From assembly GCF_964194025.1 (NCBI RefSeq), contig NC_134480.1:44268001-44332000 (forward strand): a stretch of 64,000 bases of DNA. The letters are read 5' to 3'. This document shows, piece by piece, positions 2,740 through 40,400 of the stretch. The position numbers and the translations under genes are program-made. Under the pieces are notes generated by a model that had not been told where the DNA came from, did not search any database, and worked only from the letters and a program-made list of their open reading frames with translations. Numbering within the stretch: the stretch's first letter is position 1; each line of letters begins with the position of its first letter. The stretch comes from Convolutriloba macropyga. Its lineage: Eukaryota.

Positions 2740-5700
2740 ATGCCATCGAATGAAATAAACCAAGAATCGGCCAATAAATGGCTGACTGATTTGTGGTGGC
2801 AAGTTAAGGGGGCTGAAGACGAGAGAGAGTATTACAGTAACACTGCAGTGAACTATGAAGAGATTTCAGCCAATTTGGGCTGGAGGGCTCCTCAACTTTG
2901 TATGCAGGGAATCACAAATTATGAGCGCAGATCAGGTACAGCTTGCTGATTTAAGTCTGTACTTTCTCTGATCAGCAAACTGTGCGCTGAAATTTCTGTG
3001 ATCATTGAAAAATGATACTGAGTTTTCCTGATCAGAAAAACTAGTTTGAAACTATGAACCTTCTTTGACCAGAAAAAAAGCCATGATCATGATCAGTAGA
3101 ACATGCACACAGCAACAATTAGTTGTAATTTGAAAGGTACTTTTGAACCAATTGGCATTTGACAGAAAGTGGATCTTTTCAACATTTGCACCCCCCCCCC
3201 CCCTTTGGTACACAGTAGAGAATCGCCACCCCTTTTGTGCTATACTTTACCACAATATTATTTGGCCTACAGCTTCGTATAATCGTCTCTGATTGGTTAA
3301 TAAATCGCTCGCTGAAATTCTGTTCAATAATAGTCCCCCTTTTGCAAAAGGGGGGCAATTGTTGAAAAGATCCCAGAAAGTACTTATAAAGTAAGTAGAA
3401 ATTGCTTCTCGATTCTACAGAATTAACTAAAATTGAATTAATTTAGAAGAAACTTTGCACTGATCGGTGAAATTGCAATCAATATTTCTTAGCCACTGTA
3501 ATTTTTGGTCACGAATAAGATACATGAAGTGACATTCCCAGTCCCTAAATTAAGCTAGACAAGGCGCTCTTTTCAGTCGACGTAGTAAAAAAATTACCTT
3601 AATTCCTTGTCAGTTATTGAATATCTTTTGATGGCATTCAATCAAATAATCATAGAAAAACTTAAGTGACGTAGGGTTTAATTTCAAGGTATCACAATCC
3701 CACGAGATGGTAGAGCAATTGACATTGGAGCTGGAACTGGTCTGAGTGGTCAAGCTCTTAGAGACATTGGATTCACTGGACAGATTGATGCTCTGGAACC
3801 AACTGAGAACATGTTTGTGCAAGCACAACCCAAAAACATCTTCACACTCTGGTATCACGAACTCTTGTTGGAGGACAAGGTGAAAAAGTGATGATTTTTA
3901 AGTACAAAATGACACAATTTTGAACCATTTTCAGCTCGTGACCTTCGGAGCAAACATTTTGCGTGACCTGCTTTGAACCCAACGACCATGGTAAAACTTA
4001 CGGGTAAACTCACGGCAGAAGAGGCTACCAAATTGCAGGAGAACAAAACGCCCTTGTTTGGACTGTTAATTTACTTATATTTTCATCAAAATATTGTGTT
4101 AGGGTACAAAAAGGTATCCTTGTTCATAACTTACTTTATAAACAGGTTCGGAGAAACATTACCTCCATTAATCAAAAAAGAAGTATTTGATATGATAGAT
4201 GGCGTAACTGATCTTGTCAATTTGTTAGTATCTCTGCCGTGAAATTTTACTTTAGCTACATAAAAAATAAACTTTAACTGCAGTTGGACCTTTGGGAAGG
4301 ATAATTTTGAATTTCAGGAAACCAGTGTGCCTAGTAACACTTATGATTTGGCATATTCCGTGGGAGTCTTCAGCGACAGATCAGCAAAGTAAGCAAAAAT
4401 TTTCAACTATTTTTGTTTTTTTTTTCTCGAAACAATTTAGTTCAATCATTTCTTAACACAAAATAATTTGTAATTTGTTCAGACTAATTACGAGGACTCA
4501 TTCAATTTTCGCAATTCAACATCAAAGGTTCATCTTTTTTGTGACTTTGAGAAACAGGGAATCTCTTTGCTATACCAAGTATGATTAAGTATAACTCTGC
4601 TTGATTGAGTTATTGAACTGCCAAGCTAGCAATTTTAGTAAAACTATTGCTTCAAAGTTACTTATAAAAATCTTTTTCCTGTTAAATTTTCATAATCAAC
4701 GATTGTCATCGTCTTCAAAGCTTTGCGATCTCTTGTTTGTTCTAATGTTCCTCTACTTTTATCTGATTGTGGCAAAAAAAATAAATGAAGATTTTTACTT
4801 TTTGTTTTTGATATTTATCTTACTACAACCAATTGTAGACAGGCATCTTTTCTTTGTTTCCAATTTCCCATTGAGTTCATGTGAAATTTTTTAAAGCAAA
4901 TTGCACTCTTTTTGAAGATTTTATGCAGAACGTGTACTTCTTTGAAGTGTTTGTAGAAAATCATATTTGTTTAAATTTGACAAAATTTGAGCCGCCTCTC
5001 AACATTATCGATTTCAATGTTTCTGTTTGTTTTCAGAGGTTCTTAATTTGTCTTTTTTATTGTAACAAATGTCTGAAAATTTCAGTAAATTTTTCTCAAA
5101 AATTGAAGAAAACGTCGGAATGCTGGGCTCCAAACCTCCAATGATCTCTTAGGGCTTTATTCCTGTGTCTCCCTCGAAATGAAGTCGATTTAATACTGAG
5201 AACTTTTTTTAGTCATTCATGCTGAAACAGAAATAACGACAAAAAGAGAAAACAACTGAAAACTGAAAATCTTAGTAACTTTACGTTTATCTTCTTCAAA
5301 TACAATATCTTCAAGGCTACCTTTCGTTGGTNNNNNNNNNNNNNNNNNNNNNNNNNNNNNNNNNNNNNNNNNNNNNNNNNNNNNNNNNNNNNNNNNNNNN
5401 NNNNNNNNNNNNNNNNNNNNNNNNNNNNNNNNNNNNNNNNNNNNNNNNNNNNNNNNNNNNNNNNNNNNNNNNNNNNNNNNNNNNNNNNNNNAAAAAGAGA
5501 TAGAAACAGGAGATGAATGTAGTTTTGAATTCATGTTTTTGTATTTCATGTCTACAATAGTTTTCTTTCCAGTGGTACCACTCTTATTTTTCCAGAAAGT
5601 GAAAGAAACTTCAATTTTGGTTCGATAAGAAAATGTGGGCCTGCAATATAATTGCCAAAAATTTTCGTCGAAAATGTGGGATGAAAAATATCAATTATAG

Positions 5701-6207
5701 CATTGATACAAGGCAGCCGCGATATTGGCAATTTTTCGAGATTTTTGATTGAGTGTATAGAATATCTAGTAGAAAAAATATAATTGGTTTCAATATTAAA
5801 TGCACGCCATTTTATAGTTGAAAGCAACGGTGATGATTATTCCCTCCTCATAAGATATAAAAATCAATAAATTTAAATTCTTTTTATTAATTTTTGCTTA
5901 CCCAAAATTAACGAAACAAATTATTACCGAATAAAGACAGATCTAAATTTGTGCATACTTTTTATTAGGACATTACTCGCTATTTCTTTTTTGTTACAGG
6001 AGCGGAGGGTTGAGAGATTCGGTTCGTATGGTCAAACCAGGCGGTCATGTTGCAGTAATTTGCGTGAAACGACACTGGGATGGAGATTTGGACATCATGG
6101 CCCAGAAATTGCAAGAAGAGGGAAAAGTTGAAATAAAACACGTTGAAGTGTTTGAAAAATATTTTTATCATACCAATTCGGTTTCGTTCATTCTTCAGAA
6201 GCAGTGA
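2740..6207 (+). CDS. Class I SAM-dependent methyltransferase, METTL27/WBSCR27-like, paralogue A; join(2740..2935,3689..3879,4318..4388,6000..6207), 221 aa
   Basis: GT-AG introns of phase 1/0/2 give a continuous 666-nt ORF: ...YYSNTAVNYEEISANLGWRAPQLC...|RAIDIGAGTGLSGQALRDIGFTGQIDALEPTENM (motif I plus acidic residue after beta2)...|SNTYDLAYSVGVFS (motif II)|LRDSVRMVKPGGHVAV (motif III). Same exon structure as the paralogue at 34495. Acceptor TTTTTAG ending at 2714 implies an upstream non-coding exon. AATAAA at 6275-6280. METTL27 similarity is from recall of the family, not a search. Confidence 0.88.
3171..3373. mobile_element. 203-bp MITE, Merlin-like, in intron 1 of methyltransferase A
   Basis: TIR GGATCTTTTCAACA(T/A)TTGC...CCCCC at both ends. 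Perfect 8-bp TSD CAGAAAGT (3163-3170 and 3374-3381). GG termini with an 8-bp TSD fit Merlin/IS1016. A related end occurs near 35747. Confidence 0.8.
5332..5491. other. Assembly gap (160 N) in intron 3 of methyltransferase A
   Basis: Run of N. Confidence 0.99.
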
Positions 6208-7283
6208 AAGAGAGCATCAAGTGTGAAGAGATTCTGAAGTAATCAGAGAACTAACTTCCGAGACTTTCAAACACAATAAAACCTAGTGACTTGTCTAGTT
6301 ACTTGATAACGCGATCATATCTATTGCATTTCTTGTAAATATTAATTTAATATAATATAATTAGTTGCAGTAAAATTTTAACCTCAGTTTCGGTTTTACT
6401 TTATGTGGTCAATCTAACGGTCCACTCTTCATTACTTGGCCGAAGTCCAAAAAAGCAAATCAATAATTTTACGCGTTTTGTGGAAACGAGTGATAGAATT
6501 TGGTCAGAAGTTTGCTTTTTTGGTTATCATTTTCCATGATGGAGTATAGTTACTCAAAACGTAAATATAAGTTACTTAAATCTTATTAAAGAAAGCTTGT
6601 ATTTTGTAACCAGTATTCAGGTATAAGTTCAACCCATTTCCACAATTTTGCGCGTATAATTAGACAGAGTCATTGTCCAAACTTATTAATGGTTTTTGGA
6701 TCCCAGTTGAAAGACTTTTTTATTCTCGCAAAGAAAGATATTGGTAATTGCAAAATTGCTAATTTCCTTTTGAACTGCAATTAAATCCGTAAGCTAAATT
6801 TCTGAAAAATCGGTTTTCTTTCATATTGGTTCAGTTGCAAAGAGTTATAGCTGGGTACGTTGCGATTTATGGCGAGGTAATTGGTCATAAAGATTGACCC
6901 AAGTTTTAACCTTCGCCCCCAAAACGGGCAACGTGAAATATAGTAACCAATTTTGAAGCAAAATTGATCTAAATTAGGCTACTGGAACTGATTTTCGAAA
7001 ACGCTTGAAGCTCTGATCATAAAACTTGGGTGATGAGAAAAGGATCAAAATCTTTCATTTACGCGAGAAAGCTGATATTGGTCACGTAATGTTTCTGTTG
7101 TAATCCAATTCTAAACTCTACACGACTATCGGGGAACATCTATTTGAAGAGTGTAGTAGCAGGGAATAAAATGAAAAAGTTACAATACTAAATGGTAATC
7201 TGTTCCAGTATAATTTTAAGAATTTTCAAGAGAATGATTTAAGATGCAATATTTCTATTAATAACCAGACAAAAGGCCAACGA

Positions 7284-9668
7284 ACACTAAGCAAGAACGT
7301 AGAAGTTACGTAGAACAAGGTCAACTGCAGTTTTATAAAGCGAGCATAAAATTTAGATATATTATCCGATGGACTAAAACGCAATCAAAAATACCTGGAA
7401 ACGCGGTTATCAAATACAACGTATTTGAGATGAGGTGCTTATACCATAGCTTCTGGACAAATCAAGCCCTGAAAAAAGTGAATCGAATCAAAAGTAATAA
7501 ATAATAAGCCGCTGTCAAGAGTTTTGGTTTAAAATTGTAATACGTCTTGCCTATTTCAAATCTTGAAAAAGAAGAATAACTTGATGATTGCAGAATGCTA
7601 TTTAACCTTAACTTATAAACTGTTTTTGGAATTTCAACATCATAGAGCCGTTTGTAGATAAGAAAGCATTTTTATCGTTATCTGTTACTACTTTTCACGG
7701 CTAACCAGCTAAGAAATGAGTTTATGTAGGTACAAGTTTACGACGCATATACAATCTAAGGAAAAAGGTATCTGCATTGAACATCGTTCTAACAAAAATA
7801 TGGAAACCGAAACATGAACAAAAAATGGCTCTTTTCTTTTTCTTGAAGTCGAACTTCAGATGAAGTTAGCTGCAATAGATATTCATCGTAACACTAAGAA
7901 TGTTTACTTTGAATACATATATTGAGATCAATGGATAATCAATATAAAAAAGGAGATTACGATTATTTTCAAAAAAATTTTACGAAAAAATGAATTTTAA
8001 ATTTACGTCTCAATGAGTTTAATAATTTTCTCTTTCCGTAAAATTTCTTGATTTACCCAGTTTAATGAAATTACTGTTTAAAGTGAGACCTCTATCAATC
8101 TCGTAATTTTTTTATTGGATGTATATACATAAAACCAAATTATTAATATTTGTTCCATTATGTAAGGATGCCTGTTGGGGGGGGGCTAGAGTAAACAAAT
8201 AAGAATATACTTCGTAACTACACTCCGCGCTTTAACTCACTAGTTTCTACACTATAGGTAGCTCATTTTCTCCGCACCATTATTTCTCGGCTACATCATT
8301 TAAAGTCTTTAACTCCCAAGACCTCGCCGTTGCCCAAGTTCTCACTTTAAATATTATTGTTTTATTCAATTTTTTTGGGCAAATTTTCCACGAGATAAGT
8401 TTTTTTTATCTAAATACTGGTACTTAATTTCTGATACCTTTTAATTTCTAATTTTTTGCCATATCTAGCTGGAATACATGAGATTGTTGCGGACTCCAAA
8501 GGAAACTCCAAAAACTATCTGAAAAAGCAGGAGGATTTCGATACAATGAAACAGATTTTAAAGCTTGATGACCGATTGACTTTAATTTTAAATGTACTTT
8601 ATGTAATTTATACTCGAATATATACAAACGGGTTTACTTTTTCTTCAATTTGAAATCTCCAATTTAAGAAGGACTTATTTTAAACTTGACGTAGCTGGCC
8701 ACTTTCGATGGAAAGAAACATTTGAAAAAAATGGGAATGAATTGAAGTTAACAGCAACCTCATGTAACTACACATCTTTTTTTAATGGTAAAATTGATTA
8801 ATTTATTGAAGACATAATTTTAACAAAGTTTTTGTTTCGAGATATTTCCATCTATTGAAGAATTTAGGTGATTTACAGAGGTCTCAATTTAAACAAGAAT
8901 TTGCTTTTGAATTAGATAAATACAGATATTTTATTGAAAGAGAAACTTATGAAACTAATAAAGACGTAATTTAATTTTTTTTTTCGTTAATTTTTTTTGA
9001 AAATAATCGTAATCTCCTTTTAAATACTGATTTTCCATAATCTCAATATATGTAGTCAAAGTAAACATTCTTAGTGTTGCGATGAATAACTATTGCAGCT
9101 AACTTCATACGGTGTTCAGCTTCAAGAAGAAGAAAAGTGCCCTTTTTTTGTTCATGTTTCGGTTTCCATATTTTTGTTAGAACAATGTTCAATGCAGATA
9201 CCTTTTTCCTTAGATTGAATATGCGCCGTAGACTTGTACCTACATAAACTCTTTTCCTAGCTGGTTAGCCTTGAAAAATAGTAACAGATAACGATAAAAA
9301 TGCCTTCTTACCTACAAACGGCTCTATGATATTGAAACTCCAAAAACAGGTTATAAGTTGAGGTTAAATAGCATTCTGCAATCATCAAGTTATTCTTCTT
9401 TTTCAAGATTTGAAATAGGCAAGATGTATTACAATTTTAATCCAAAACTCTTGACAGCGGCTTATTATTTATTACTTTTCATTCGATTCACTTTATTTCA
9501 GGGCTTGATTTTTCCAGAAACTGTGGTATACGCACCTCATCTCAAATGCGTTTCCAGGTATTTTTGATTGCGTTTTAGTCCATCGGATAACATATCTAAA
9601 TTTTATGCTCACTTTATAAAACTGCAGTTGACCTTGTGCTACGTTACTTCGACGTACTTGCTTAATGT
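7284..9668. repeat. Long inverted repeat (foldback): arms ~7284-8098 and ~8870-9668, spacer ~770 bp
   Basis: For example 7441-7620 is the reverse complement of ~9350-9530 with about 9 differences in 180 nt. Inner parts are more diverged. No TSD found. Confidence 0.85.
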
Positions 9669-10876
9669 ACTTGCAAAGAATGTATGTTTCCAGCAAAAAT
9701 ATTATTATGATCATTATATTTTCATAATAATAATTCAATATTATCAAAAGAATGGCTATATGAAGAATATAGCTTCACATATAAATCGTATATATAAACT
9801 GCCTGAGCTGTGTACTGGTAATTAATCAAAACTTCATATTTGTTTTTCCTATGTTCGAAATCGATCAAGTCAAATAAAGGATTTTATCAGAAAATAATAG
9901 AAAATTTTTTGCGCCCGTTTTAATAAAGCAGAACTATGAAAAGATCCAGTGTTTATTTTTTACTTGTTTCGTTATGGAAGAGTTAATTCGGGTAAATTTT
10001 GATTATAGTGCTCCATGTTAGGCCTCAATTGGTTTAAAAAACAACCCTGAAACAAATTTTAGAAAAAGGCCAACAAGTACGTTTATTAGGCTTAATCTAC
10101 TTGGTATTAAAAAATAATGATAATGTAACGGCATTGAATCTCAAATATAGCCAACTAATTTAACGATATTAGGAAATAGGGAGCGTGATACATGATTAAA
10201 TTTTTGATTAAATTTTGTTTATACTTTAATTTCCATTCATACCCTCCCCGTTGCTATGAGCCAGACGTTGTTCATACATGATAATCTCGATAAACTTTGT
10301 ATCTCATGTTTGGTTCATATTGAGAGGTTGTGAACATTTCCTTACTTTTTTATCCATACATTTTGAATTGGTTTCTAAATTACTATTCATTCGGTAATTG
10401 TAATCTCTGATTTTAGGTTGTTAATTTATTCTTTCGAAACCTCATTAGCAAACGGAAATCGAAATTAACGAAATTTATTCTACTTATGCTTTCGCGTCGC
10501 AAAATCACATTAATTTTGTTATTTCAAATTAAGACGCTCGTAAAGCAATTCAACTCAAAAAAGATTACGCTATTCGCGTAATACAGGGAGTTTTTGGGAA
10601 CAGATGTTCAGTTCCTTTATGAAGAACTTTTCCTCAGAGAACACCAGGTTTGTTTGTGGAAAGGGAAGTTGGCTTTTTTATGCAGAACTAAGGGTGCAAA
10701 ATGCACCCTGGCTTTTGCCGCAGTCTAAAAGTAAACGTACCGGATTTGATTGAACCATCTAGTTGATAATAGCTGCCCAGCTCGGGGATTTTTTCCAAAA
10801 TTATGAACAAAATTGTGAATATACCTTTCTTGACCCATGGTAACGGAAAACACATTTAAAATTTTTGCTTTGTTCC

Positions 10877-11093
10877 TATTAATGAATTATGTTGGGATGG
10901 GGAATGTGCTTAGGACAATTTTGATTGTGTACTATTAAAGTAAAATTACATTTGATTCGTTTTGTTTTGCTTGTTTTGTTGCTATAAAAGGTTTTGAGAA
11001 GTCGACTACTTCCATCAGGTTTTGAAATTGAATGTGTTTTCGTTTTGCCGGCTTTTTCCTCTAAATCGATCAAAAGTCAACTTGTCCTTGACA
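10877..11093 (-). repeat. 3' LTR of BEL/Pao element
   Basis: Starts TGTCAAGG on the - strand directly after the PPT-like AAATGGGGCCGGCGA (11094-11108). Abuts the TSD GTTCC. Confidence 0.9.
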
Positions 11094-11699
11094 TCGCCGG
11101 CCCCATTTGCAGGATTGCAAAATGAATAAAACTGTTGGAGTAAGTGCTGAATCATGCATCCAGATGAATAATGAAATAATTTCAAAATAAGGGTAAAGGA
11201 AACACAAGGGTTCAAATCTAATCGGGAGGTTCGTAAGAACGAGTCGCTTAAATTAATAACGGAATTACCAAACGAAATAACCAAAAATGTCAAATGAGAG
11301 CCAGTGGGTTTGGGACGAACCTCTAAAAAATAATATCAAAACAAGGTTAAGACGAGCGCTATCGATAAGAATTTGCCATATAGCACAATCGTTGGCAATT
11401 GGAAAGCGTTATTTTTAATATCAGCAAAGTAATCGCGAATGTAGTCCAAAATAGAGGGGAATAAAACAAGGTAACACTTATGAAAGCGTATGAGACCAAA
11501 TGTATGCAAGCAATTGCTAAAATGACGGTTTCACAATGAAATTAATTAAATTGGTGCAAAAGGTAAAAAAAATTATGCTGTCGATGTATTGCTAAATTTG
11601 GGGTACAATAAACACAATCCGTTAAGCGCATTTCCGATCGTAGAACCTCTGGATTAAAAATTTAGTCAGGAAACAGTTTGTTCAACTTTACGACGGAAC

Positions 11700-17255: not shown

Positions 17256-17369
17256 TGTATTGAGGTTGACCTCATCTCAACCATTAATGAGAAGTCAGAG
17301 TTGTGCAGACAAACCGAGTGGAATCAGAAATCTTTTGATGGTTACAGTAGTTTTTTTACCGCAAGAAGC

Positions 17370-18232: not shown

Positions 18233-18243
18233 GTTGGGTGCCA
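18233..18243 (-). promoter_or_regulatory. Primer binding site, tRNA-Lys-like
   Basis: TGGCACCCAAC 4 nt inside the 5' LTR, one mismatch from the tRNA-Lys(CUU) PBS TGGCGCCCAAC. Confidence 0.65.
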
Positions 18244-21229: not shown

Positions 21230-21680
21230 ATTTGATGAGATTGAACTCGCATAGTGAGAAAATCAAAATCCGAGAAAAACATTTATCCTGCTAGAAATAA
21301 TAGGAGGTCCATCAAATTCTCTCTCTGCATAATCAGATAAAACATCACAAGGAAGCCTTTTAAGAAACTTTTAAAACTTCATGAGATAAAAAAAATTAAA
21401 TCACTGTGGTACCAACTGCGCGAAAACCGCTGGATACCAAAAAAGCTGCTGACAGCAGTCTTTTCATGTTTATCAGCTACTTTCTTTCTAGCTTTGTTTC
21501 TTTTGGTGTTCGTATTGTTCTCGATACAAATGGTATAACACAAACCAAGATTGTGGCAAAAAGTTTTAATTAAACAAAAGAAGAATTTAAATCATCATTC
21601 TAATGAATCAGACAGCTCAAGGTTTTATCAAGAGTCGGATTGCCCTAATTGTAAGTTATGTTCGAATTTGCTTTTAAGTA
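21230..21680. repeat. Dispersed repeat copy related to 23740-24160
   Basis: Shared AATAGGAGGT..TCAAATTCTCT, AAGATTGTGGCAAAAA and AAGGTTTTATCAAGAGT blocks. Confidence 0.7.
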
Positions 21681-23012
21681 CTATGTCAGATCAAAATCCG
21701 AACCCCACCAACCCCACTCCCCCCCCCCCACACACACACACTAATTTTGACAGGAACACATTTCTTCGGTAATGGTACAAAGATAATATGGATTTATTCT
21801 CATGCGTATCAGCAAGAATAAGAAATGATTACTTTGCTTAAAAGATTATAATATTTGTTTTTAGGGACCTTGACTTTTCATACTTCTTGTAGCGTGATTG
21901 CTTAATGATAAAACCAAATTCAAGTTCACCGGCTGATAAAATTACCTTGAATAAACAATTCACGAAGAAACTATTCTATTCTCATCTCAGTTAAATGTGA
22001 GTAATTTTCTCATAAAGGTGAATTTTATAAACGAACTTTGATGGTTTTCTAACGAATCTGCGTCTTTTAGAAGGTAAGCTCCTGTCATCAAATTTGCTAT
22101 ACTCATTTCCAACCAAAGCACACATCAGCCGCAGTTTTTTTTCTGCTAAGTCTAACTAAACCAAACAGAATTCGGCAACAAAATCTGTCCTAGTGGAACG
22201 ACATTTTTCAAGATTTTTGTAACTGAAACCCCCTTGTTTGTTGTTATTGATGAAAATTATCAATCTAAGATCTAACATAAACCAATAGGAAACATGAAAA
22301 TTTGTTCGCCAAGTTCACCCGAAAAAAAATATAGCGACAAAATTGCGTATCAGACAAATCTGCTACAGTAAAATTTTTTATTTAAAATATCCCTCTGCAA
22401 ATTTGTGGATAGTTTTGACTATTTCAACTGCAACAAATTACTTTGTGATCATGATCAAGACATTCTAGCGTCCGGCAAGAAACTTTACTTCTTAATAAGG
22501 GAAAAGATCGTTGTAAGCCAGATTCTAATGATTTTTCTATTTTGTAAATTTAGATACAAAACTTTTTTTTCCAATTTGAAATCTGAACGATTCAACAGTC
22601 TACATATCTGAACTTGAATTTCAGTTAAAATCAGTTAAAGCAGCCATTGAAGCTGTTAACCATGTACCTGTAAATTGAGTTTCTTTCTTTCCTTTTGCTA
22701 GAATTCTTTTTGTTAAAATTCCTATAAGTAAGGATTTCCTTATAGCAATCATGCAGAAGAATAGAAATATAAACCAATAAAGAAGCTCGATAATATGCGA
22801 TTGCACATAAAGTTCCAACACCGCTCATCCACAATTTTGACATAATTGTCTACCAAATGAAGAACAGATAGAAAACCCTAAAAATTCAAGTTTTTTTCAT
22901 TAGTGTTTGAACAAAAAGATAGCCTCCAATGCAAATAACTCAAGAGTGTGAAGGAGGATTAGATTGCTGAGATCTGCCAATTTTAAGAAAGCGAGCCAAG
23001 AAGAACAGCAGA

Positions 23013-24013: not shown

Positions 24014-27000
24014 AAATGTCTAACCTAAACTAAGATTGTGGCAAAAAGTTTGAGTAAACAAAAGAAGAAATTAAATCCTCTTTCTATTGAATCAGAAAAC
24101 ACAAGGTTTTATCAAGAGTTGGATTAATTGAATTGTAAGTTTTGTTCGAATTTGCTTATAGGAACAAAATTGCGAATTGAAAAAGTGTTTTTTTTTAATT
24201 TTCAAAAAACAATCGTTTTCAAAGTCAAGAAAGTTATCAGCTATCTCCTAATACCAGAATATTGGCTAACGTATTCTTCCGTAAGAACCAAGGAAACTTG
24301 TAGTTCGAAACGAAAATTCATAAAACATAAAAGAAAAATTGAAAATGACAGTAAAATAGAATATAAAAAAAAATTTAAAATAAAATTTAACAAAATATTA
24401 AAAATAAATTTTTCGAGAAAGTGATGCCGAAGCCTAAAAAACATATCTATAGAAAATTTAATATGATCAATTGTGTTTTTGCGAAAACCAATAATGTGAT
24501 ATGTTAACTGTCAAAACGTGGTAATGCGACAGAACGAGAAAACGTGAAAAAATGCAAATGCCTAAAAAAAACTAAAATCTATTAGTATCAAACCCAGAAA
24601 CCAGAATTTAAGGCGTGAAACCACCATATAGGTTAAATTCTTTTTTCTGTACAAAGAACCATTCTTTCTTTGCCGACTCTAAGCAAAAAGATCACCAAAT
24701 TAAGGAAAAAATGAAGGCAATATTCAGTAAGCCGTTATTTATTTAAAAATCAAAAATCTTTAAATATCAAGGCAGCCATAAGCTTTCTAGCAAAAAATCT
24801 AGATAACTTAATTTACAGTTTAAAGGAGCCAATTGGACCTATCACTAGTGAGTTTTGATTTGAGTTTTTATGTTCTTTAATTATTATAAAAAAAAGCCGA
24901 ATTTAAAAAGAGAAAGACTGACTGATTGCGATTTTAACTTTTTATTGGATTGTAACAGTCCAAGATTGATTCAAACTAGCCATGCTAATGCTGTTTGGCC
25001 ATTAGAAACAATTATTTATTCATATATGATATATATAATCAATTTTTTAATTGAAAAATCAAAAATAGATGCTGCGTTTTTGATAATCAACGAGTAAAAA
25101 ATGGCAAAACACTAATTTCAGAGCACTCTCAATGGGAGTTGAGGTAGTAATAGCCTCTCTGTTAGTCTACAAAGACTTTGTGCGTTCTTTTTGGGTTGTT
25201 TACTTCCAGAAAATTTCATCAAAGTGGAAAAAAATGCTTATTTTGCACTATTTTTGATTAAAAAGGCTGAATTTCTAGCCAAAGTTTTGTTAAAAAATTA
25301 AATAAAACTAGTCAACAAAACTTTTCTGTCTTTGAAAATGAAATCAACAACCATATCTTAAAAAATTTTAACAATTTTTAGCAAAATTTAGGCATTAGGC
25401 AAAAACTACGGAAAATCTGAATAAAAGTAACGCAAATCGGTCTAAAATTCACAAAAATTGAAACATCAATACCCGCTCTGCAAAAAGTGATACCACTCAC
25501 AACTCTCTACAATCTATGTATCGATCGGTCATAATTGACGGAACAAAAAAAATTTTAAGTATATGGTTCCTACCCCCTCTAGAGGGGTCGGAACAAATAC
25601 ATATAGATATAGTAGCAAAAAAGAAGTTTCAAAGTTAAGTCAATATTTATGTTTATCAAATGTGTAATTTGTCTATTCTTAAATCTCCAAGCTATCATAG
25701 ATCTTGATGAATTGTCAAAAATCAATTATCTATTAAAAACTATTCGACATTTTTGAGATTTTATCGTCCGAAAATGTCGGATTTTCAACGAATCGTATCG
25801 AAATCAGAATTGTGATCGCAGCGTATCAGTATTCAGATAAAAATTTAGGGTGAAACGGTTCGCTATCTCTCAAAATTTTTAATGAAAAACATGTTAGCTT
25901 GTTTTCTATCAAAACATGTCTACCAACGTTTCCCGTATCAATTTTGTTCAGTATTTGATTTTTTTCCATACATTTTGTCAAGTTCCACAAGAAAAATAAA
26001 CTATTTTTACTAGCTAATTGAAAAAGAAAGAAAACGCTGAAAAGTTGACAATTTGTCGCGCATATTGAGCGATTTTGCTTCACTAAAAACAAAATTTCGC
26101 TAATACAAATAGTTGCTTAATTATCAAACTAATTTTTCAAGTTATATTGTTCCTGTGTTAACAACTATGAAAATGTCATCGATATCCCCACAATAACAAG
26201 ATCCTTCAAAAGGAATCATCAGTTTTGGATGGCAAGTTCCATTTTCATGTTAAAATTAGCTAGTTTTGTGCCAGTGGGTATTGACGATGGGATAGTGGTG
26301 ATGGATAAATGCACTGTCTGAGTAAAAAAAAAACAAAACTAAAATGTAGCAGTGAAAACTAACTATGAAAATCTTTACTAATGTAGATAAAAATATCATA
26401 GATGAAAATTTTAATATTCAGGAAATTTATAAATTGTATAGTGCTTGAATGCAAGTATTAATATTATAGACATGATGAGGCCATTGATGACATTTACAAA
26501 AAGTTGTGGAGATGATTATAATATAAGAACTCTTTCTGACCATCATTAATTGTAGTAGTTCAGTTATTTCGCTTGGCAGAACAATTTTGTCTTCATTAAT
26601 TTCTAAAAACGTTTCCGACTTGAAGTTTTTCTCAAGTAATCTGTCAAATAATTCCCGAATTCATCATTATTTTATTTTATTTTTTTATTCATCTCTTCTG
26701 TTCATTAAAAACTCGTCTCTGATAGATAGTTTTTAATGTTTGAGTACAAAATATTGATGAATTACTTTTTGCAACAAATAGTACGCTTCAATTGAAAACG
26801 TTGTTTAACCTAAATGTCTAACCTAAACTAAGATTGTGGCAAAAAGTTTGAGTAAACAAAAGAAGAAATTAAATCCTCTTTCTATTGAATCAGAAAACAC
26901 AAGGTTTTATCAAGAGTTGGATTAATTGAATTGTAAGTTTTGTTCGAGCTTGCTTATAGGAACAAAATTGCGAATTGAAAAAGTGTTTTTTTTTAATTTT

Positions 27001-29585
27001 CAAAAAACAATCGTTTTCAAAGTCAAGAAAGTTATCAGCTATCTCCTAATACCAGAATATTGGCTAACGTATTCTTCCGTAAGAACCAAGGAAACTTGTA
27101 GTTCGAAACGAAAATTCATAAAACATAAAAGAAAAATTGAAAATGACAGTAAAATAGAATATAAAAAAAAATTTAAAATAAAATTTAACAAAATATTAAA
27201 AATAAATTTTTCGAGAAAGTGATGCCGAAGCCTAAAAAACATATCTATAGAAAATTTAATATGATCAATTGTGTTTTTGCGAAAACCAATAATGTGATAT
27301 GTTAACTGTCAAAACGTGGTAATGCGACAGAACGAGAAAACGTGAAAAAATGCAAATGCCTAAAAAAAACTAAAGTCTATTAGTATCAAACCCAGAAACC
27401 AGAATTTAAGGCGTGAAACCACCATATAGGTTAAATTCTTTTTTCTGTACAAAGAACCATTCTTTCTTTGCCGACTCTAAGCAAAAAGATCACCAAATTA
27501 AGGAAAAAATGAAGGCAATATTCAGTAAGCCGTTATTTATCTAAAAATCAAAAATCTTTAAATATCAAGGCAGCCATAAGCTTTCTAGCAAAAAATCTAG
27601 ATAACTTAATTTACAGTTTAAAGGAGCCAATTGGACCTATCACTAGTGAGTTTTGACTTGAATTTTTATGTTCTTTAATTATTATAAAAAAAAGCCGAAT
27701 TTAAAAAGAGAAAGACTGACTGATTGCGATTTTAACTTTTTATTGGATTGTAACAGTCCACGATTGATTCAAACTAGCCATGCTAATGCTGTTTGGCCAT
27801 TAGAAACAATTATTTATTCATATATGATATATATAATCAATTTTTTAATTGAAAAATCAAAAATAGATGCTGCGTTTTTGATAATCAACGAGTAAAAATC
27901 GGCAAAACACTAATTTCAGAGCACTCTCAATGGGAGTTGAAGTAGTAATAGCCTCTCTGTTAGTCTACAAAGATTTTTTGTGCGTTCTTTTTGGGTTGTT
28001 TACTTCCGGAAAATTTCATCAAAGTGGAAAAAAATGCTTATTTTGCACTATTTTTGATTAAAAAGGCTGAATTTCTAGCCAAAGTTTTGTTAAAAAATTA
28101 AATAAAACTAGTCAACAATACTTTTCTGTCTTTGAAAATGAAATCAACAACCATATCTTAAAAAATGTTAACAATTTTTAGCAAAATTTAGGCATTAGGC
28201 AAAAACTCCGGAAAATCTGAATAAAAGTAACGCAAATCGGTCTAAAATTCACAAAAATTGAAACATCAATACCCGCTCTGCAAAAAGTGATACCACTCAC
28301 AACTCTACAATCTATGTATCGATCGGTCATAATTGACGGAACAAAAAAAATTTAAGTATATAGTTCCTACTCCCTCTAGAGGGGTCGGAACAACTTAAGC
28401 AAAAAAGAAGTTTCAAAGTTAAGTCAATATTTATGTTTATCAAATGTGTAATTTGTCTATTCTTAAATCTCCAAGCTATCATAGAACTTGATGAATTGTC
28501 GAAACTCAATTATCTATTAAAAACTATTCGACATTTTTGAGATTTTATCGTCCGAAAATGTCGGATTTTCAACGAATCGTATCGAAATCAGAATTGTGAT
28601 CGCAGCGTATCAGTATTGATAAAAATTTAGGGTGAAACGGTTCGCTATCTCTCAAATTTTTTTATGAAAAACATGTTAGCTTGTTTTCTATCAAAACATG
28701 TCTACCAACGGTTCCCGTATCAATTTTGTTCAGTATTTGATTTTTTTCCATACATTTTGTCAAGTTCCACAAGAAAAATAAACTATTTTTACTAGCTAAT
28801 TGAAAAAGAAAGAAAACGCTGAAAAGTTGACAATTTGTCGCGCATATTGAGCGATTTTGCTTCACTAAAAACAAAATTTCGCTAATACAACTAGTTGCTT
28901 AATTATCAAACTAATTTTTCAAGTTATATTGTTCCTGTGTTAACAACTATGAAAATGTCATCGATATCCCCACAATAACAAGATCCTTCAAAAGAAATCA
29001 TCAGTGTTGGATGGCAAGTTCCATTTTCATGTTAAAAGTAGCTAGTTTTGTGCCAGTGGGTATTGACGATGGGATAGTGGTGATGGATAAATGCACTGTC
29101 TGAGTAAAAAAACACAACTAAAATGTTGCAGTGAAAACTAACTATGAAAATCTTTACTTATGTAGATAAAAATATCATAGACGAAAATTATAATATTCAG
29201 GAAAAATATAAATTGTATAGTGCTTGAATGCAAGTATTAATATTATAGACATGATGAGGTCATTGATGACATTTACAAAAAGTTATGGAGATGATTATAA
29301 TATAAGAACTCTTTCTGACCATCCTTAATTGTAGTAGTTCAGTTATTTCGCTCGGCAGAACAATTTTGTCTTCATTAATTCCTAAAAACGTTTCCGACTT
29401 GAAGTTTTTCTCAAGTAATCTGTCAAATAATTCCCGATTTCATCATTATTTTATTTTATTTTTTTATTCATCTCTTCTGTTCATTAAAAACCCGTCTCTG
29501 ATAGATAGTTTTTAATGTTTGAGTACGAAATATTGATGAATTACTTTTTGCAACAAATAGTCCGCTTCAATTGAAAACGTTGTTT
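24014..29585 (+). repeat. Recent 2.8-kb head-to-tail duplication (24014-26806 and 26812-29585)
   Basis: Offset of 2798 nt, near-identical sequence (duplicated spurious ORFs at 24128/26926 and 24870/27668), 5-nt junction insert AACCT. Confidence 0.92.
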
Positions 29586-31914: not shown

Positions 31915-31990
31915 GCCAATTTAGCTTAGTGGTTAAGTCTTAATGCGCAAATAAAATGTAACAAGTACCCACGCGCGAGTTCGAGTCGAA
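31915..31990 (+). pseudogene. tRNA-derived sequence (SINE head or tRNA pseudogene)
   Basis: A box TAGCTTAGTGG starting at position 8 (31922) and B box GAGTTCGAGTC (31977-31987). No intact acceptor or anticodon stems. Confidence 0.5.
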
Positions 31991-32194
31991 TATAAAGCAA
32001 ACCGAGTTAAGCGGGAGTTAAGCTGAACATATTATTTTTCGTGCGGCAAATTTCACGCAAAAATCAAGACTGGCCAGTGTAATCTGGGACATGAGCAGAG
32101 TACTAGCCATCCTAAAAAACAGAATGTCTCTAGTCAGTGCTGATTTGCTCTGCCACTGACCTCCGGGGTGGCATTATTCCCAGCCCATGACGAA

Positions 32195-34025
32195 CTTTTA
32201 CCCTAAAAAAGAAAAAAGATGCAAGATAAACGGGGTAATCGGGGGATTAATTAGCACTTTCCCCTCAAATTTCTTGCGTGTTTTTTGCGGGTAATGCGGA
32301 ATAACTCGATACGAAACTGAGGAGTAGTCGGACAATTTGGAGGCAGGAAAAACGGTGCATTGCATGGGTAGAAGGACGCAAGAGTAGGGGTTAATGGGAT
32401 ACAAGGATGGACGACTAGGGTGTAGTGGGTTTAAAACGACGCAAGATTAGTGCGTTATGGGGTAAAACGATGAAAGAGTAGGGATTAATGGCTGTGAAAC
32501 GCCGCAAGAGTATTGGTTAATGTTAGTTAAAACGATTGAAGAGTATTTGGGTTATAGGGTTATAACGATGCAAGAGTAGGGGGTGATGGGGGATGAAACG
32601 TTGCAAGATTGGGGGAGAAATGGGGTGCAACGATAAAATATTAGATTTCATTGAGAGTTTAAACGATGCTAATTTTAGAGCGCAATTGGGGGTAAAACGA
32701 TACAAGAGTAGTACTGTCTAAGGGGGGGGGGGGGGGTAAAACGTTGCAAGAGTAGTAGGTTATGGGGGTTAAATGATGCAGGATTAGGGGGGGGTGTATA
32801 TGGGGGATCGAGGTAAAGCGACGCACGCATAATTGCCCTGTCGTTTCCAAATATAAGAAGCGTCCGTTTTCGTTGGATCCTAAGCAAAATCAAAGACTCC
32901 TGATTTTTGATAATACAAAATATTAAAAGAGGATGAAAATAGCAAAAAAAGCACCAGAATGATCAATCTAAGGCAACAAGAAAGCTGTTCTTTATGTTTT
33001 CTGGTTTCGTTTGGCAGATCAAGTTCGTATGTTTTCTCTACTTGTCTTGGGTTATCGTCAGACCCTGAAAAAAAAACAAAAAAAACTGAATACAACAGAA
33101 CCACAACAAAGCGATCATGCCGAGAAAAGAGCCTGGTTAACACCACACCAAAGCAGAGCATACAAAGGCAGAAAAAAAGTCAAGAAAAACAGAACTTAAT
33201 GCCCGTGCTGAGCATATAAGTAGCAGGGAACAAAAACGGGCACGAAAAACCGGCACAGGCAAAAAGAGCCCTCCTAACCAAAACCTAAGCACCCAAAGGA
33301 GAGAGCAAAGCCAAGCAAAACAACACCTAGGGACTCAGCTAAAAGCCTATTGGAGAGAAGATAACGCAGAAAGCTATCATAAACCTAGTCCTAAGAAAGC
33401 GCCGGCAAACACATGGGCCAGCAATTTCCATTCAAAGCATTGAAAAGATCAACCTGGAGTTAGAAGAAGCCAAGAGACCCTCCACCCAACCTCCGCGCAA
33501 TCCAGATCCAGGCAACAAGATGGTCCTTCCAACCCAAACCTAATCACTCAAAGGCAAGACCAAAGCCAAGCAAAGCATCACCTAGATCTAAGTTCAGTTG
33601 CACGTGTTTCCAGACTATTTGGCTTATATTTATTAGAATGATTTTTTAAATTAGAGAGCGTTCACTAAACACACTATACCATTTTTTGCAGTCTTCCTAA
33701 TAGAGGTCTTTTTGGATAAGAAGACCCCCATATCCCCATTATCCTCTAATCTTACATCTTTTCACCCTTAAAATTATCCCCCAATCCTACATCTCTTTGT
33801 CTGGTAATTTGGGGGGATCTAACAACTCCCTTACTCACCATCATCCCCTTGTTTTAAAACGTTTTAACCCCCTAAAATTACCCCCTAATTTTTACATCTT
33901 TTTGTGGGGTAATTTTGTTGGGGGTACAATCAAAGAGTTCACTCCATTACCCTTACTACTCCCATTTCTCTGATAACCTTACCTGGTTGTGCACCCAAAA
34001 AGACAATTACCCCCTACTCTTCTTT
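32195..34025. repeat. Foldback-like region: purine-rich degenerate tandem repeats (32200-32830) and complementary C-rich blocks (33720-34025)
   Basis: GGGGTAAAACGATGCAAGAGTA-type units on the left, ATTACCCC..ATCTTACATCTTT units on the right. The ATCTTACAT motif is shared with the 34838 and 53281 elements. Confidence 0.5.
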
Positions 34026-34300
34026 TTAACTTAAAATTTATATATTTTTTTATTTAATTGACTTCTAAAATGCGGACGTTATTGTGAATTTATGGCAAAA
34101 AAGTTGCATCTTGTAAGTCGCAATATTTTATGTACGATGCTAATTTATGATAAACCGAAAAACATATATGATCTTTGAATGGTTACTGGGGAAATGATAC
34201 AAAACATATATGACCTATTGTGGATCATGTAGGTCCTTTTGTGGTAACGACGAATTTTGTATCATATTCAACCCAGGTTCTAGAATATTATCAGGTACCA

Positions 34301-34422
34301 CCCAGGTTTAGGTGCGCAACCCTAGACCTATCTGATCAGACCATTTCCCAGACGTCCACGCCACCGGTGTGCGACCCAAATGGTCTGATCAGAGCTGTAT
34401 AGGGTCGCGCACCAAACCTGGG
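34301..34422. mobile_element. 122-bp MITE with CCC termini and 2-bp TSD (CMC/EnSpm-like)
   Basis: ~45-bp imperfect TIR CCCAGGTTT..GGTGCGC.ACCCTA...TCTGATCAGACCATTT, flanked CA|CCC...GGG|CA. A related degenerate end lies at ~52390-52490. Confidence 0.75.
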
Positions 34423-34494
34423 CAGAGTAACGATTTTATACAATTGTTAAGAGACATATTTTAAAACGTTTCCAGCTCTCAACTATCCATAACA

Positions 34495-37400
34495 ATGTCA
34501 TCGGCTGAAACAAATCAAGAAGAAGCCAACAAATGGCTCACTGATCTCTGGTGGGGAGTGAAATGCGCAGATGAGGAGAGAGATTACTACAACAACAGTG
34601 CTGCAAACTACGAAAACTTTTCAGCCATTTTGGGATGGATAGCACCACAATTGTGTATGGAGGGAATCACTAAATATGAAACAATATCAGGTATCAGTTA
34701 GCTTACGTTTTCTAAGTTTTTACTCTTTTGGTGAAACCTAATTTGCTTATTCAGACTCAAGTGCTCTCATACGCTCGAAATGGTCTGGACTAGGACGATT
34801 TCGAGCGCACACCTCACCTGGGAGGTGCAGCAAAATACCCGGTTTGAGGTTTGGTCTGAAAAAAATGTATGATCAGCGGTGAAAAGTGGTGAAAAAAACT
34901 TTTTTCACCGCAAAGCGCCCGCATCTTTTAGCGTTGAATGCGGTGAAAGCGGTGAATTTTTATAAGATTTTATGTTTTTAGCATTGAAAAAAATTTTTTT
35001 GCACCGCTTTCACTGGATTTCTTACAAAAAGGAAACACCCGTACACGGGTTCGAACCTCTCACCTCCTGAATGTCACCAACTTCTTGTTCCACAGCGTCA
35101 TCTGCCAGTTACTTCAATGTTATTTCCTGTGAATTTAAGATAAGAGTTGAAATTAGCGGTGAATATTTGTAAGATTTGCAATTTTAGCGGTGAAAACATT
35201 TTTTCACTGCAACCTGGTAGCGCTGAAATTTTTTTTCACCGCATTCTGCCGGTAGCGGTGAAAAACTTTCTTTCACCGCTTAAGCGGTAAAAGTAAATTT
35301 TTCATAGCTGAAAAGTATTTTTTTCAACGCCTTCATTGCATGGAGCGCAAATCTTTTTACTCAAATTCACCGCAAATCTTACATCTTTTAGCAATCTTTA
35401 GCGCTGACACCTCAACCTGGGTAAAATAGAAAAAAATGTTTTTAAATCATTGGTAGCGCTTCTCTGGTCAGAACTAAAGTTGTCCGAGATTTAGTGCAGA
35501 GTGTCTAATATGAAGAAAGCGCTACACCATCAAAGTTTTAAAAGGCTTTTAGAAACTTTTAGCTAGCAAAAATGACAAAATGTAAAATGGCTATATTTCG
35601 TAATGGCTAAAAAATTTGAATCACGATTCAATTCAGATCATTTTTTGCCATTCTGCCCCGCCAGAGAGCAACAAGATCGAATTGTATTATGTTTTAAGTA
35701 CGTTATATCAATTTGTGCTTCTTATCATTGTTGCTAAACGATGCTAGGATCTTTTCCGTTTGTGCCCCCCCCCCCCAGCTTATTGGGTACATATTATTTG
35801 CACCCCCAGACGCACGTGTCACATTTTTCATAATGGTTTGCTGTCGGTTTGACGCACGTCTGTAGAAGTCTGTTCAGTTTGCATTAGACATGGTGGGCAA
35901 TGACCGAAATGGCAACTTTCGATAAATTTTGCTGTTTGTGGGAAAGAGTAACACAAAATTGTCACCATTTTTCATTTTTTGGTAATCATTTCCATGATGG
36001 GTTATAGGTACTCAAAATGGGGAGCTAATTTACTTATATTTCAATAATAGGCTCATATTTTTAAAAAGAGTGCTCGCGATTTAACGTAACCAATTTCTAT
36101 ATTTCTGAGCATATATTTAGACCAGAACTTTTTTGCCCAAGGGTATTTGTAATTATTTGAGAACCAGTTCAAAGAATGAATTTTAATTGCTAACAATGAT
36201 TCTACAAATAGCAAAACTAAAAATTTTCCTTTTAATCTGCGAATAGTATTGACAGGGGAATTTCTGAAACTGATCACCAATTGAGCTTTCTTTCATCTCG
36301 GTCAATATGACACTATCTTAGTTATTTAAAAAAGAGCTAATTATGGCGTGGAAATTGTTGATTAACGGCATGGAAATTAGTTACAAAGTCTGCAAAGTTT
36401 TCAAACTAACCCCAGAAATACTCATCCTGAATAATGCCTGCGAACTTTATCAGTCGGCCTATAACTGCCCTCGGTCGCGTACTTGATCGTATCAATTCCT
36501 TGTTAATGTTCTTATTGCTTCCTTGAAACCATATATGGTCCTTTATTGATTAGCAAGAAGATTAGCAAGGAGATTAGCATTAAAAATTATTTTTCTTGCG
36601 TTTTAAAATTGAAAACAAATAATGTTAAACATCAGACAATAAAATATCTCTGCGTTGCACCAAATTTGTTTCCGAGTAAATGAAATGAGCCACAAATGAA
36701 GTTATGTAAGTCTATCTAGCAAGCAATGTCATTGCGTCATTTTCATAACCATGTAAGCTTTTTAAAAAAGGTTAGCCAATCAAATTCGAGTACTTGAAAT
36801 GTGCATAAAGTACTTTCTATTTTATGTAAAGAGCTTGGAAAAAGTGCAAATAACACAATCATTGAGCCTAATAAGAAACTAGAGCAATTGCGCTCGTTTT
36901 AGACAAAATAAATTTAGATTTTGAAAATGTATCGGTGACCGATCTGAGCCGAAGATTGGCTCAGATATAAGACCTGCAAACAAATGCAGCTAGATTTGCC
37001 GATGAAGTTTAATATTGATTTTTGCTTTTAACTTCGTTGAGTTATCACGTTCCGCCTTGATAATCTGGATTTACGAGTTACCCCGTCATCATCCTGTTAA
37101 TGCGAAATAAGCATTCGAAAGTCTGTTTCATCAGCTTTAAGTACGTATAATCATGAAGGTTGATTATAGCAACAATTAGTATTTGGAATTAGCTTGTAAA
37201 CAAAATTTCGTAAAAAACCTCAATGTAACTTCAATTTACTCCACGAAATCATCATTTTTTTGAGCAAAATTAATTTATCGGAAAAAAACATGAGTGTGAA
37301 ATTAAATAATTATATTGGCCATATCCAAGATTGATCAAAGGTAATGATTTTTTCTTCAAAATAATTGATTCTGAATGGTTGCAAGAAATCATAGCATTGA

Positions 37401-40400
37401 ATCTGGACTTGATATGCCTTTTTAAGACATGCATGAAATTGACTTCTCTTGTAAAAATTCAAACACCTGTGTAATAGATTCCAAGATTTCCTGAAAATTC
37501 TTGCCGAGACTTCCTTTCTTGGTACCCATGAAAAGATTTATTTTTTTTGGCAGGTTTGGGTTACGTTTCCCTGTAAGATAGCAGCCGTTTTGCTAGGATA
37601 GCGGATATTTAGATTTTAAAAATGTATCGGTGACCTATCTGAGCCGAAGATTGGCTCAGATATAAGACCTGCAAACAAATGCAGCTAGATTTGCCGATGA
37701 AATTTAATATTGATTTTTGCTTTTAACTTCGTTGAGTTATCACGTTCCGCCTTGTTAATCTGGATTTAAGAGTTACCCCGTCATCTTCCTGTTAATGCGA
37801 AATAAGCATTCGAAAGTCTGTTTCATCAGCATTAAGTACATATAATCATGAAGGTTGATTATAGCAACAGTTAGTATTTGGAATTAGCTTGTAAACAAAA
37901 TTTCGTAAAAAATTTCAATGTAACTTCAATTTACTCAATGAAATCATCATTTTGTTGAGCAAAATTAATTTATCGGAAAAAAACATGAGTGTGAAATTAA
38001 ATAATTATATTGGCCATATCCAAGATTGATCAAAGGTAATGATTTTTTCTTCAAAATAATTGATTCTGAATGGTTGCAAGAAATCATAGCATTGAATCTG
38101 GACTTGATATGCCTTTTTAAGACATGCATGAAATTGACTTCTCTTGTAAAAATTCAAACACCTGTGTAATAGATTCCAAGATTTCCTGAAAATTCTTGCC
38201 GAGACTTCCTTTCTTGGTACCCATGAAAAGATTTATTTTTTTTGGCAGGTTTGGGTTACGTTTCCCTGTAAGATAGCAGCCGTTTTGCTAGGGGATATTT
38301 CGATTAAGGTTATGATCAGAAGTTTTATTGAGTCTTACAGGGTTCGAGCTCGTTTGTTTCCAATTTTTGTGCAAATACCATTTGGTAAATAGGGAATATC
38401 TAAAAACCGTGTTGGAATCTTTTCTAGGTACTCAAATCCCACGAGATGGGAGAGCAATTGACATTGGAGCTGGAACTGGTCTGAGTGGTCAAGCTCTTAG
38501 AGACATTGGATTCACTGGACAGATTGATGCTCTGGAACCAACTGAGAACATGTTTGTGCAAGCACAACCCAAAAACATCTTCACACTCTGGTATCACGAA
38601 CTCTTGTTGGAGAATAAAGTGAGATGATATTGGTTAATTTATAGGCAAATTTGATATTTTTGTCTTCTGTCTACACCGAGATTATTGGGATATAAAATTG
38701 ATGAATGAACTGAGGAAGATTAAATCCTGGATCGTGGAAAATTTTAAAACTTTTACTATGCTCAAAATAAAATTTTGATTTCAACAACTTGAATGAATAT
38801 TTGTACTTTGTTTGCAATGATTGTTTGTTTTAGGAAACAAGTGTCCCGAGCAATACGTACGACCTTGTCTACTCAGTGGGCGTCTTTAGCGACAGATCAG
38901 CAAAGTAAAAATCTTTTAATCAGTTCCTCTTTAGAATGTGGCAAGCAATAATACTGCTTATTTAAAAAGCTGAATTGAAAAATTTAGCTACAAAGATGAA
39001 TAGTTTTTCGTTCTCTACCATATTGCGACTACAATTTGGATAGTTTATAAATGCGGCCAACAGTTTAATTGTTCCCCTCAGAGGGTATTTATCAATCAAA
39101 CACGGTTTTTCTCAGCCAAATTTGAACAATTGCTATAGTTCAGAAAAAAAGATAACTACGAGTTCATAGAAGGCCTGACCAGCGTAGTGTATTTCAATCG
39201 TGGGACTTTTGTTTCAGACGAGTTTTCTTTCAACTTCTGTTCATTTGTCTGAGCTGTAACATATAAAAAAGATATATCATACACTTAAGTCGTTTTCAAT
39301 TTCAACTGCTGTTTTTAGCTTTTAAAATTTTTAGCACATCCAGGCAAGTGATTTTTTGTCAGCGAAAGCATACCAAAATCCAACAAAAATTTGTCGCACA
39401 ATTATCAAATAGCTGTTGCTAAATTTCTTCAGTTGTGTTTCAAAACTAACATCTGGAAACCACTGACAATATTATGTTATACAGCTGGTAGTTTAGTCAA
39501 TTTTTCTAAACTTCTAATTTTTAAAGAATCATTTGTTCCAAACCTTAAGCAATCATTTCAAAAACTAAAAACAATTGGACTTTTTTATTGACTTTTTTTC
39601 TTATCAAATTGTGTAGATGTTTTGCTCTCTCCTATCAATTGCGCTCCAAAAAAACTGTTCTCAATTAGCCAAGCTCTTACTTCCTGGGTATACTGTGTTG
39701 CTGTTCGGCATCAAAAACATAACCAAATTTTTTCAGAAAAAATTTCCTTTTTCGTTTTTTGGTGAATTTTAGAAGTTATTCTGCTGCTTGCACCGCATAT
39801 CAATAAAAAATTCGATAAATATGAGCCCAGTAATACAAGTAATCTCTGGTATGTAGACATTATGTTTTTATCCATTTTTTTCAGAATTATGTCCTTGTAT
39901 TTTCATCTCTAGAGTACATTATTCTCATCTTCCTTCTAAACACAATTTCTGATGTTTGTTTCCAAAGTTTGTGGTAATTATTTTTCGCCTGACCAATTGT
40001 TCTTGTGACCTTGTTGACTTTTAGTCTTCAAAAAATATTGAACCGGTAAAGCCCGGAGGGCAATAGCAGCTCTCTCAGGCTCTCAAAGCCTTATTCTTTA
40101 GTATTCTCTAAGTATGTGACTCACCAAAACTGTTTTAAGGAGACGATTTCTTAGTGTGAAGGGCGGTTCTTAATCTTAAAAGTTTGACCCCCGCAGTCAA
40201 CTATTTACTTTGGCTTATCTTATGTTTAATATTTTTGGATTTGCGTTTTCGAGCTTAATATAAATCAATACTGAAAACTCAGAAAGATACAAATTGGTGA
40301 CACAACCGTAAGATCATATAATCACACAACGGTCATATTGCTACAATATTTCAATTTTTTATTATCACAAAAATATGTCACAAATTTTCAGTATTAATAG

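Follow-up and report, generated by a model that had tools for sequence, protein, structure and literature searches.

How can one exon be identical between two genes whose other exons have diverged to or near saturation at synonymous sites? This question is raised by a 64,000-nt stretch of the genome of the acoel Convolutriloba macropyga (C13:44268001-44332000; the window), which carries two tandem genes, A and B, for predicted METTL27-like methyltransferases. C13 is a chromosome-scale scaffold of 49,130,780 bp in an assembly of 1,175,981,408 bp, and the genome note reports the same total length (PMC13650328). An earlier note on this DNA had proposed recent ectopic gene conversion over ~35 kb, confined to exon 2. 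This reading is supported by the length of the identical run, by the contrast in synonymous divergence between exons and by cDNA (complementary DNA) and DNA contigs. Non-allelic (ectopic) gene conversion between A and B therefore explains the tract with a probability that we put at about 0.85.

An identical tract inside two diverged genes

Gene models were built from a six-frame comparison of both regions (tblastn) and inspection of the splice sites. Gene A has four exons on the plus strand and encodes 221 aa (2740-6207). Exon 1 (2740-2935) starts with the ATG at 2740 and encodes N-terminal helices, exon 2 (3689-3879) is 191 nt long in phase 1, exon 3 (4318-4388) has 71 nt, and exon 4 (6000-6207) includes the stop codon. 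Gene B, also with four plus-strand exons, encodes 223 aa (34495-41150), with exons at 34495-34690, 38428-38618, 38834-38904 and 40937-41150, the last again including the stop codon. Exon 4 of A and exons 1, 3 and 4 of B were placed by sequence comparison and gene model, and exon 2 of B by direct comparison and gene model. These models reproduced the exon limits of the earlier note. A third tandem copy with the same four-exon structure, gene C, lies ~6 kb upstream of the window (exons 647-848, 4849-5042, 7834-7904 and 8241-8448 in the coordinates of sequence L011). A and B are not an isolated pair but belong to this tandem trio inside an 11-member family.

Logan contigs from four sequencing runs were compared with positions 2500-5330 of the window. 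The runs discussed below include a DNA run (X1), a Hi-C specimen (X4), a further specimen of the same study, presumably RNA sequencing (X7), and a 2016 run from a different study (X5). Since the X5 contigs cover exons only and contain splice joints, we treat X5 as cDNA. The GT..AG joints 2935/3689 and 3879/4318 are both visible in these contigs. After 4389, two X5 contigs match either A or B at each of the first 30 nt of exon 4, with an agreement of 0.82, the value expected for one A and one B contig. Together, the joints and the mixed exon-4 starts indicate that genes A and B are transcribed and spliced as modelled. The X5 contigs also contain a second splice donor, 3990/3991 joined to 4318, at a depth of 69 compared to 116 at the main joint. 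The 111 extra bases of this alternative gene A isoform (3880-3990) start GTG AAA AAG TGA and thus introduce an early stop.

When the two regions were compared directly with an offset of 34,739 nt, 3712-3873 in exon 2 of A and 38451-38612 in exon 2 of B proved identical at 162 of 162 nt, synonymous sites included, as the earlier note had described. The identity reaches back to 3696/38435 except at 3711, where A has T and B has G (GGT/GGG, both Gly). The near-identical tract is thus 178 nt long (3696-3873 in A, 38435-38612 in B), with one synonymous difference (0.56%), and no further difference at about 40 synonymous sites. It makes up 93% of exon 2, leaving 7 nt at the start of the exon and 6 nt at its end. 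Elsewhere in exon 2, A and B differ in the opening 7 nt (3692-3695) and in the final 6 nt (3874, 3876 and 3879), again as previously claimed. The identity of exon 2 between A and B is therefore confirmed as an observation.

The rest of the two genes is strongly diverged. Per-exon proportions of synonymous (pS) and nonsynonymous (pN) differences between A and B were obtained by Nei-Gojobori counts, which supplied the per-exon synonymous divergence that the earlier note had called for. Exon 1 has 49 differences in 195 positions (pS 0.57, pN 0.18), exon 3 has 16 in 72 (pS 0.87, pN 0.04) and exon 4 has 65 in 204 (pS 0.74, pN 0.21), whereas exon 2 has 8 in 192 (pS 0.09). Synonymous sites of exons 1, 3 and 4 are thus at or near saturation. 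At the protein level, exon 3 is identical at 23 of 24 aa and exon 4 at 61-63%. These values bear out the divergence that had been estimated for exon 1 (~49/196), exon 3 (16/71) and exon 4 (~62% of the protein). The introns of A and B had been described as unalignable, and blastn with a word size of 7 likewise found no alignment between them: the matches were the four exons and one dispersed repeat. This repeat (6465-6778, downstream of A, and 35925-36240, in intron 1 of B) is 68% identical between its two copies and is the sole similarity outside the exons.

We compared the 162-nt run with permutations of the columns of an A/B/C codon alignment. Across 20,000 permutations the longest A-B run was 64 nt (mean 23), and none of the 20,000 reached the observed 162. 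The longest A-C and B-C runs were 17 nt, a length matched or exceeded in 4,337 and 2,554 shuffles, respectively, which is nothing unusual. At the identity found outside exon 2 (0.724), the probability of a 162-nt run is ~2e-23 per start. Chance is therefore excluded. Among codons for the same degenerate amino acid, 57 of 59 are identical in exon 2 compared to 56 of 103 in the other exons (Fisher p = 1.2e-9).

The sequences of A and B place them among the METTL27/WBSCR27-like class I methyltransferases that depend on S-adenosylmethionine (SAM), which we take to be their predicted identity. Motif I (DIGAGTG) and the acidic residue after strand β2 (IDALEP) can be read directly in exon 2, and residues 2-32 of this exon align to motif I of solved SAM methyltransferases. 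Used as single-exon queries, exon 2 of A and of B gave weak Pfam Methyltransf_25/23 matches (15.6 bits, cut-off 27). A full-length family member, P0007, which is 57% identical to A over exon 2, matched Pfam Methyltransf_11 (E = 9e-10, 39.5 bits, cut-off 21.2) and, over residues 24-173, the solved METTL27 structure 7qcb_A (E = 2e-11). The acoel proteins resemble METTL27/WBSCR27 (PDB 7QCB/7QCC) in their length of ~220 aa, in the N-terminal helices before the Rossmann core and in motif I (DxGxGxG). In mouse WBSCR27, whose substrate is unknown, the N-terminal helices lie over the cofactor and make up the presumed substrate site, and the adenosine moiety of the cofactor is bound at the tips of strands β1 to β3 (PMC9240639). 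By inference from this structure, the homogenised exon 2 would encode the cofactor-binding strands and the diverged exon 1 the lid helices. A shared cofactor core with diverging flanks, as the earlier note had suggested, would be a reasonable reading of the two proteins.

Presence of the shared exon in the animal

An identical exon at two loci could in principle be created during assembly. A collapse, a chimeric contig or jumping during the polymerase chain reaction (PCR) would place one exon 2 at both loci, and a collapse or polishing artefact was one of the two outcomes that the earlier note had named as fatal to its reading. For the assembly, PacBio HiFi reads of a PCR-amplified ultra-low-input library were processed with hifiasm and purge_dups, followed by Hi-C scaffolding (PMC13650328). 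The result is 36% larger than expected, at 1,176 Mb compared to a k-mer estimate of 867 Mb (PMC13650328). The assembly is thus not flawless, and both the amplification and the excess length count in favour of such an artefact. No short-read polishing was applied, however (PMC13650328), and the 2016 cDNA run provides an independent view of both transcripts. X5 contains an unbranched contig of exactly 162 nt at 3712-3873, with zero differences from the window and a depth of 270. A-type contigs enter and leave it at depths of 135 and 116. B-type contigs join it at 3715 (depth 161) and leave at 3873 (depth 99; all in A coordinates). The depth of the shared contig is thus about the sum of the A-specific and B-specific flanks, and the branch points lie at the T/G mismatch at 3711 and at the differences from 3874 on. 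Because a de Bruijn contig has no inner branch, both transcripts must share all 162 nt.

The DNA contigs agree with the cDNA. In X1, the tract contig stops at 3873 with a depth of 90, next to an A flank at 24 and a B-type flank at 61; these are single depth figures per contig from an amplified library and carry no copy-number reading of B relative to A. Contigs of X1 and X4 start at 3703, and one X4 contig continues past 3873 into the intron of A. Exon-2 words also occur in X4 and in X7. From the X5 and X1 contigs and the HiFi-only assembly we conclude that polishing or collapse did not produce the identity, and an origin of any kind in the assembly process appears extremely improbable.

A second assembly agrees with the scaffold. 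The metaMDBG contig ERZ25071359:ctg37527_49x_l (European Nucleotide Archive, ENA; L015) matches the window with 100% identity across the 6.3 kb compared. It was presumably built from the same reads as the scaffold, which leaves its agreement compatible with an artefact in those reads. This contig also bears on a run of 160 N at 5332-5491, which lies within intron 3 of gene A, between exon 3 and exon 4, and is therefore crossed by no reading frame. The contig carries the exon-2 open reading frames (ORFs) of C and B, which lie 3 nt closer together than in the scaffold over a distance of 41.8 kb that spans the N run. Since the spacing is kept to within 3 nt, both sides of the run are continuous and its length is close to that of the stretch it replaces. 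The N run more closely resembles a masked or unresolved segment than a join of unknown length made in scaffolding.

The contigs also revealed a second haplotype around exon 1 of A. The haplotypes differ strongly in 2723-3556, with 7 changes between 2723 and 2787 and, in 2918-3556, ~39 changes along with several indels, whereas 3844-4767 is homozygous in X1. Intron 1 of A contains a short interspersed repeat (3165-3375) whose contig depth is 10,000-119,000 compared to ~30 for single-copy sequence and which has no Rfam match. It is missing from the alternative haplotype, where X1 and X4 contigs join 3164 to 3376, so that the insertion is polymorphic. The cluster of single-nucleotide changes in exon 1 of this haplotype (2760-2787) was considered as a second conversion and rejected: two of the five coding changes match B and none matches C. 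The exon-1 haplotype changes of A are thus not derived from B or C.

Probable gene conversion and its alternatives

Whether exon 2 is resistant to change in its own right can be judged from the rest of the family. The C. macropyga genome contains 11 exon-2 homologues, and only two copies, A and B, are at least 99% identical to the tract. In contrast to this number, mammals have a single METTL27 gene; the acoel has at least 11 copies. The other nine homologues are 58-69% identical to A and B, with runs of at most 17 nt and pS of 0.64-0.84. This holds even for paralogue C, which has a pS of 0.71 to the tract although it belongs to the same tandem cluster. Exon 2 is therefore not intrinsically frozen. 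No other pair among the 11 members has a comparable run together with unrelated flanks. Copies J (C8:47307297-47307455; L025) and K (C2:43777748-43777906; L026) are 99% identical in exon 2, but their adjacent intron bases are equally alike (59/60), and we rejected conversion for this pair. J and K are instead a recent inter-chromosomal duplicate of the whole locus or a retained haplotig, the latter being plausible because the assembly exceeds its k-mer estimate. In a second cluster ~1 Mb away (C13:45.05-45.33 Mb with D, E, G and H, plus F on C3831; L019-L023), exon 2 is 77-91% identical among members, with runs of at most 47 nt and pS of 0.27-0.52, whereas exon 1 has a pS of up to 0.83 (D compared to F). 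Earlier exchange in exon 2 may lie behind these values, although the sites are few and the gene models partial.

Purifying selection on the nucleotides themselves was the other outcome that the earlier note had set against its reading. A second function of the exon, as a structured or antisense RNA, a small-RNA target or a splicing or regulatory element, would have frozen the tract since the duplication. The lack of differences at the synonymous sites is what this explanation predicts. The contigs, too, show no variant besides 3711 in a genome with a heterozygosity of 3.65% (PMC13650328). The family comparison argues against it, since C and eight other members are at or near synonymous saturation relative to A and B. 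The duplication is older than dS > 1 (dS, synonymous divergence), and an element frozen since then would have to be absent from C in the same cluster. Rfam gave no match at E <= 1 within 3100-4500, and the folding energy of the tract was no better than that of shuffled sequences on either strand (z +1.09 and +0.04). Sampled 31-mer words of exon 2 were absent from the runs of other organisms in a word index of the Sequence Read Archive. Collectively, these results suggest that constraint on the nucleotides is very unlikely to explain the tract.

Searches beyond the assembly yielded relatives of the family. When 1.84 billion representatives were scanned with exon 2, the only matches besides distant relatives were ORFs of exon size from C. 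macropyga (P0001 = B, P0003 = C, P0009 = J/K). Homologous-protein searches returned only P0001 and P0003 with P0001 as the query, and two D-H-type proteins of C. macropyga with P0007. In ENA ERZ25071366 we found two further four-exon members, L027 and L028, which were rejected as orthologues of A and B, L027 being too distant (38-57% protein identity). Both come from another organism and have no match in the C. macropyga assembly. L027 is the one four-exon A/B/C-type gene found outside C. macropyga, with 57% protein identity over exon 2; it appears to be an outgroup to A, B and C. A run filed under another organism (X6; 'organism B', share 0.12) was likewise rejected as a relative, as it contains only the high-copy repeat 3165-3375 and a Hi-C ligation contig. 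This 188-nt contig joins 3465 to 4210 via GATC|GATC, covers 3369-3465 and 4210-4300, and has no other difference from the window. It looks like a Hi-C ligation product of C. macropyga DNA that was carried over between libraries.

Gene conversion would account for both the identity of the tract and its limits. A and B have the same orientation and are 34.7 kb apart. A break in one gene would be repaired with exon 2 of the other as the template, and ~178 nt would be copied. Pairing of the strands could not continue past the points at which homology stops, 7 and 6 nt inside the exon. The tract is thus bounded by the exon because the flanking introns share no homology. Its length fits the few hundred bp usual for non-allelic conversion. 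Once present, a perfect stretch would ease further exchange and allow the tract to spread to the edge of homology. Two points suggest more than one round of exchange rather than a single event: the tract covers 93% of the exon, and without exchange A and B would be expected to be only ~70% identical, like A and C. Measured against heterozygosity, the last exchange is recent, as the divergence across the tract (0.56%, one site in 178 nt) is clearly lower than the 3.65% of the genome. We infer the mechanism, its recency and its recurrence from these comparisons, and any benefit of a shared SAM-binding module would have the same standing.

The limits of the tract would look the same if a spliced transcript of one gene, or its cDNA, had been the template for repair. 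Both genes are transcribed, and the tract ends within 6-7 nt of the splice sites. However, DNA-templated conversion between genes with unalignable introns predicts identical limits, so that no observation calls for such a template, and the neighbouring exons 1 and 3 are without conversion. We therefore regard an RNA or cDNA template as highly improbable. Several observations weigh against gene conversion itself. A start from ~70% identity in exon 2, the level of A and C with their longest run of 17 nt, makes homologous repair hard to initiate, so that conversion would require a rare event, or else exchange that has continued ever since the duplication. GC content at third codon positions (GC3) is not raised in the tract (0.37-0.40, compared to 0.49-0.50 in C), and there is no sign of GC-biased conversion. 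The searches found no sister-species orthologues of A and B in which the tract could be seen to group by species and the flanks by gene. Finally, all specimens come from a single laboratory culture in Bergen (PMC13650328). All reads thus derive from one culture line, and fixation across the species is not implied.

Gene conversion restricted to one exon has precedents. Among the CEACAM1 paralogues of ruminants, homogenisation is limited to the N-domain exon (PMC7042247). The two cases share short single-exon tracts in a tandem family that are found by GENECONV-type tests (PMC7042247). They differ in that the contrast between A and B is more extreme, with a pS of 0.57-0.87 in the other exons and unalignable introns, and in that the acoel exon encodes a predicted cofactor-binding core whereas the CEACAM1 exon encodes a ligand-binding surface. 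In human duplicates, non-allelic conversion tracts have a mean length of 250 bp, conversion slows with divergence until the copies 'escape', and the tracts are GC-rich (48.9% compared to 39.6%), a GC bias (Harpak et al., bioRxiv 10.1101/135152). The 178-nt tract is on the same scale and exons 1, 3 and 4 of A and B resemble escaped sequence, but the acoel tract is without the raised GC3. The tract is a clear case of an already known process in a little-studied animal and reveals no new mechanism.

The tract nevertheless bears on how the family is studied. It represents very clean mosaic evolution within a small enzyme gene, in which the cofactor-binding exon is identical and the exons for the N-terminal helices and the C-terminus are free to differ. 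Whole coding sequences of this methyltransferase family will yield wrong trees and dS dates, and neither short reads nor probes from exon 2 can separate A from B. The tract also adds one data point on ectopic recombination in the acoel lineage, with its 3.65% heterozygosity and frequent asexual reproduction, in which such processes are hardly described. More speculatively, exon 2 might be a self-sustaining, long-lived 'conversion island' that has been kept identical by repeated exchange since the ancient duplication while its surroundings escaped. Such an island could be family-wide, as the exon-2 values of the second cluster might indicate, and could be driven by mitotic repair in a mostly budding animal. 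We consider this extension doubtful. If true, it would offer a natural model for the concerted evolution of one protein module alongside divergence of the substrate-facing modules.

Repeats and a further gene in the window

Several repeats lie between and within the two genes. A large inverted repeat at 7284-9668 may be a foldback or terminal-inverted-repeat element; a centre of ~1 kb separates its arms, which are ~700 nt long and consist of several blocks with 88-95% complementarity. Positions 24014-29405 hold a tandem duplication with a unit of ~2.8 kb that is 96-99% identical, and an older partial third copy is present at 21559-21681. Intron 1 of B contains a 695-bp tandem duplication (36912-37906; 97-98% identical).

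Downstream of gene B, the minus strand carries an uninterrupted ORF of 425 aa at 49867-51144 with a Galactosyl_T domain (PF01762, E = 2.2e-26), which is probably a single-exon galactosyltransferase gene. A second run of N occupies 59237-59585. Between the two lies a satellite of six 356-357-bp units, 90-99% identical, at 55395-57619.

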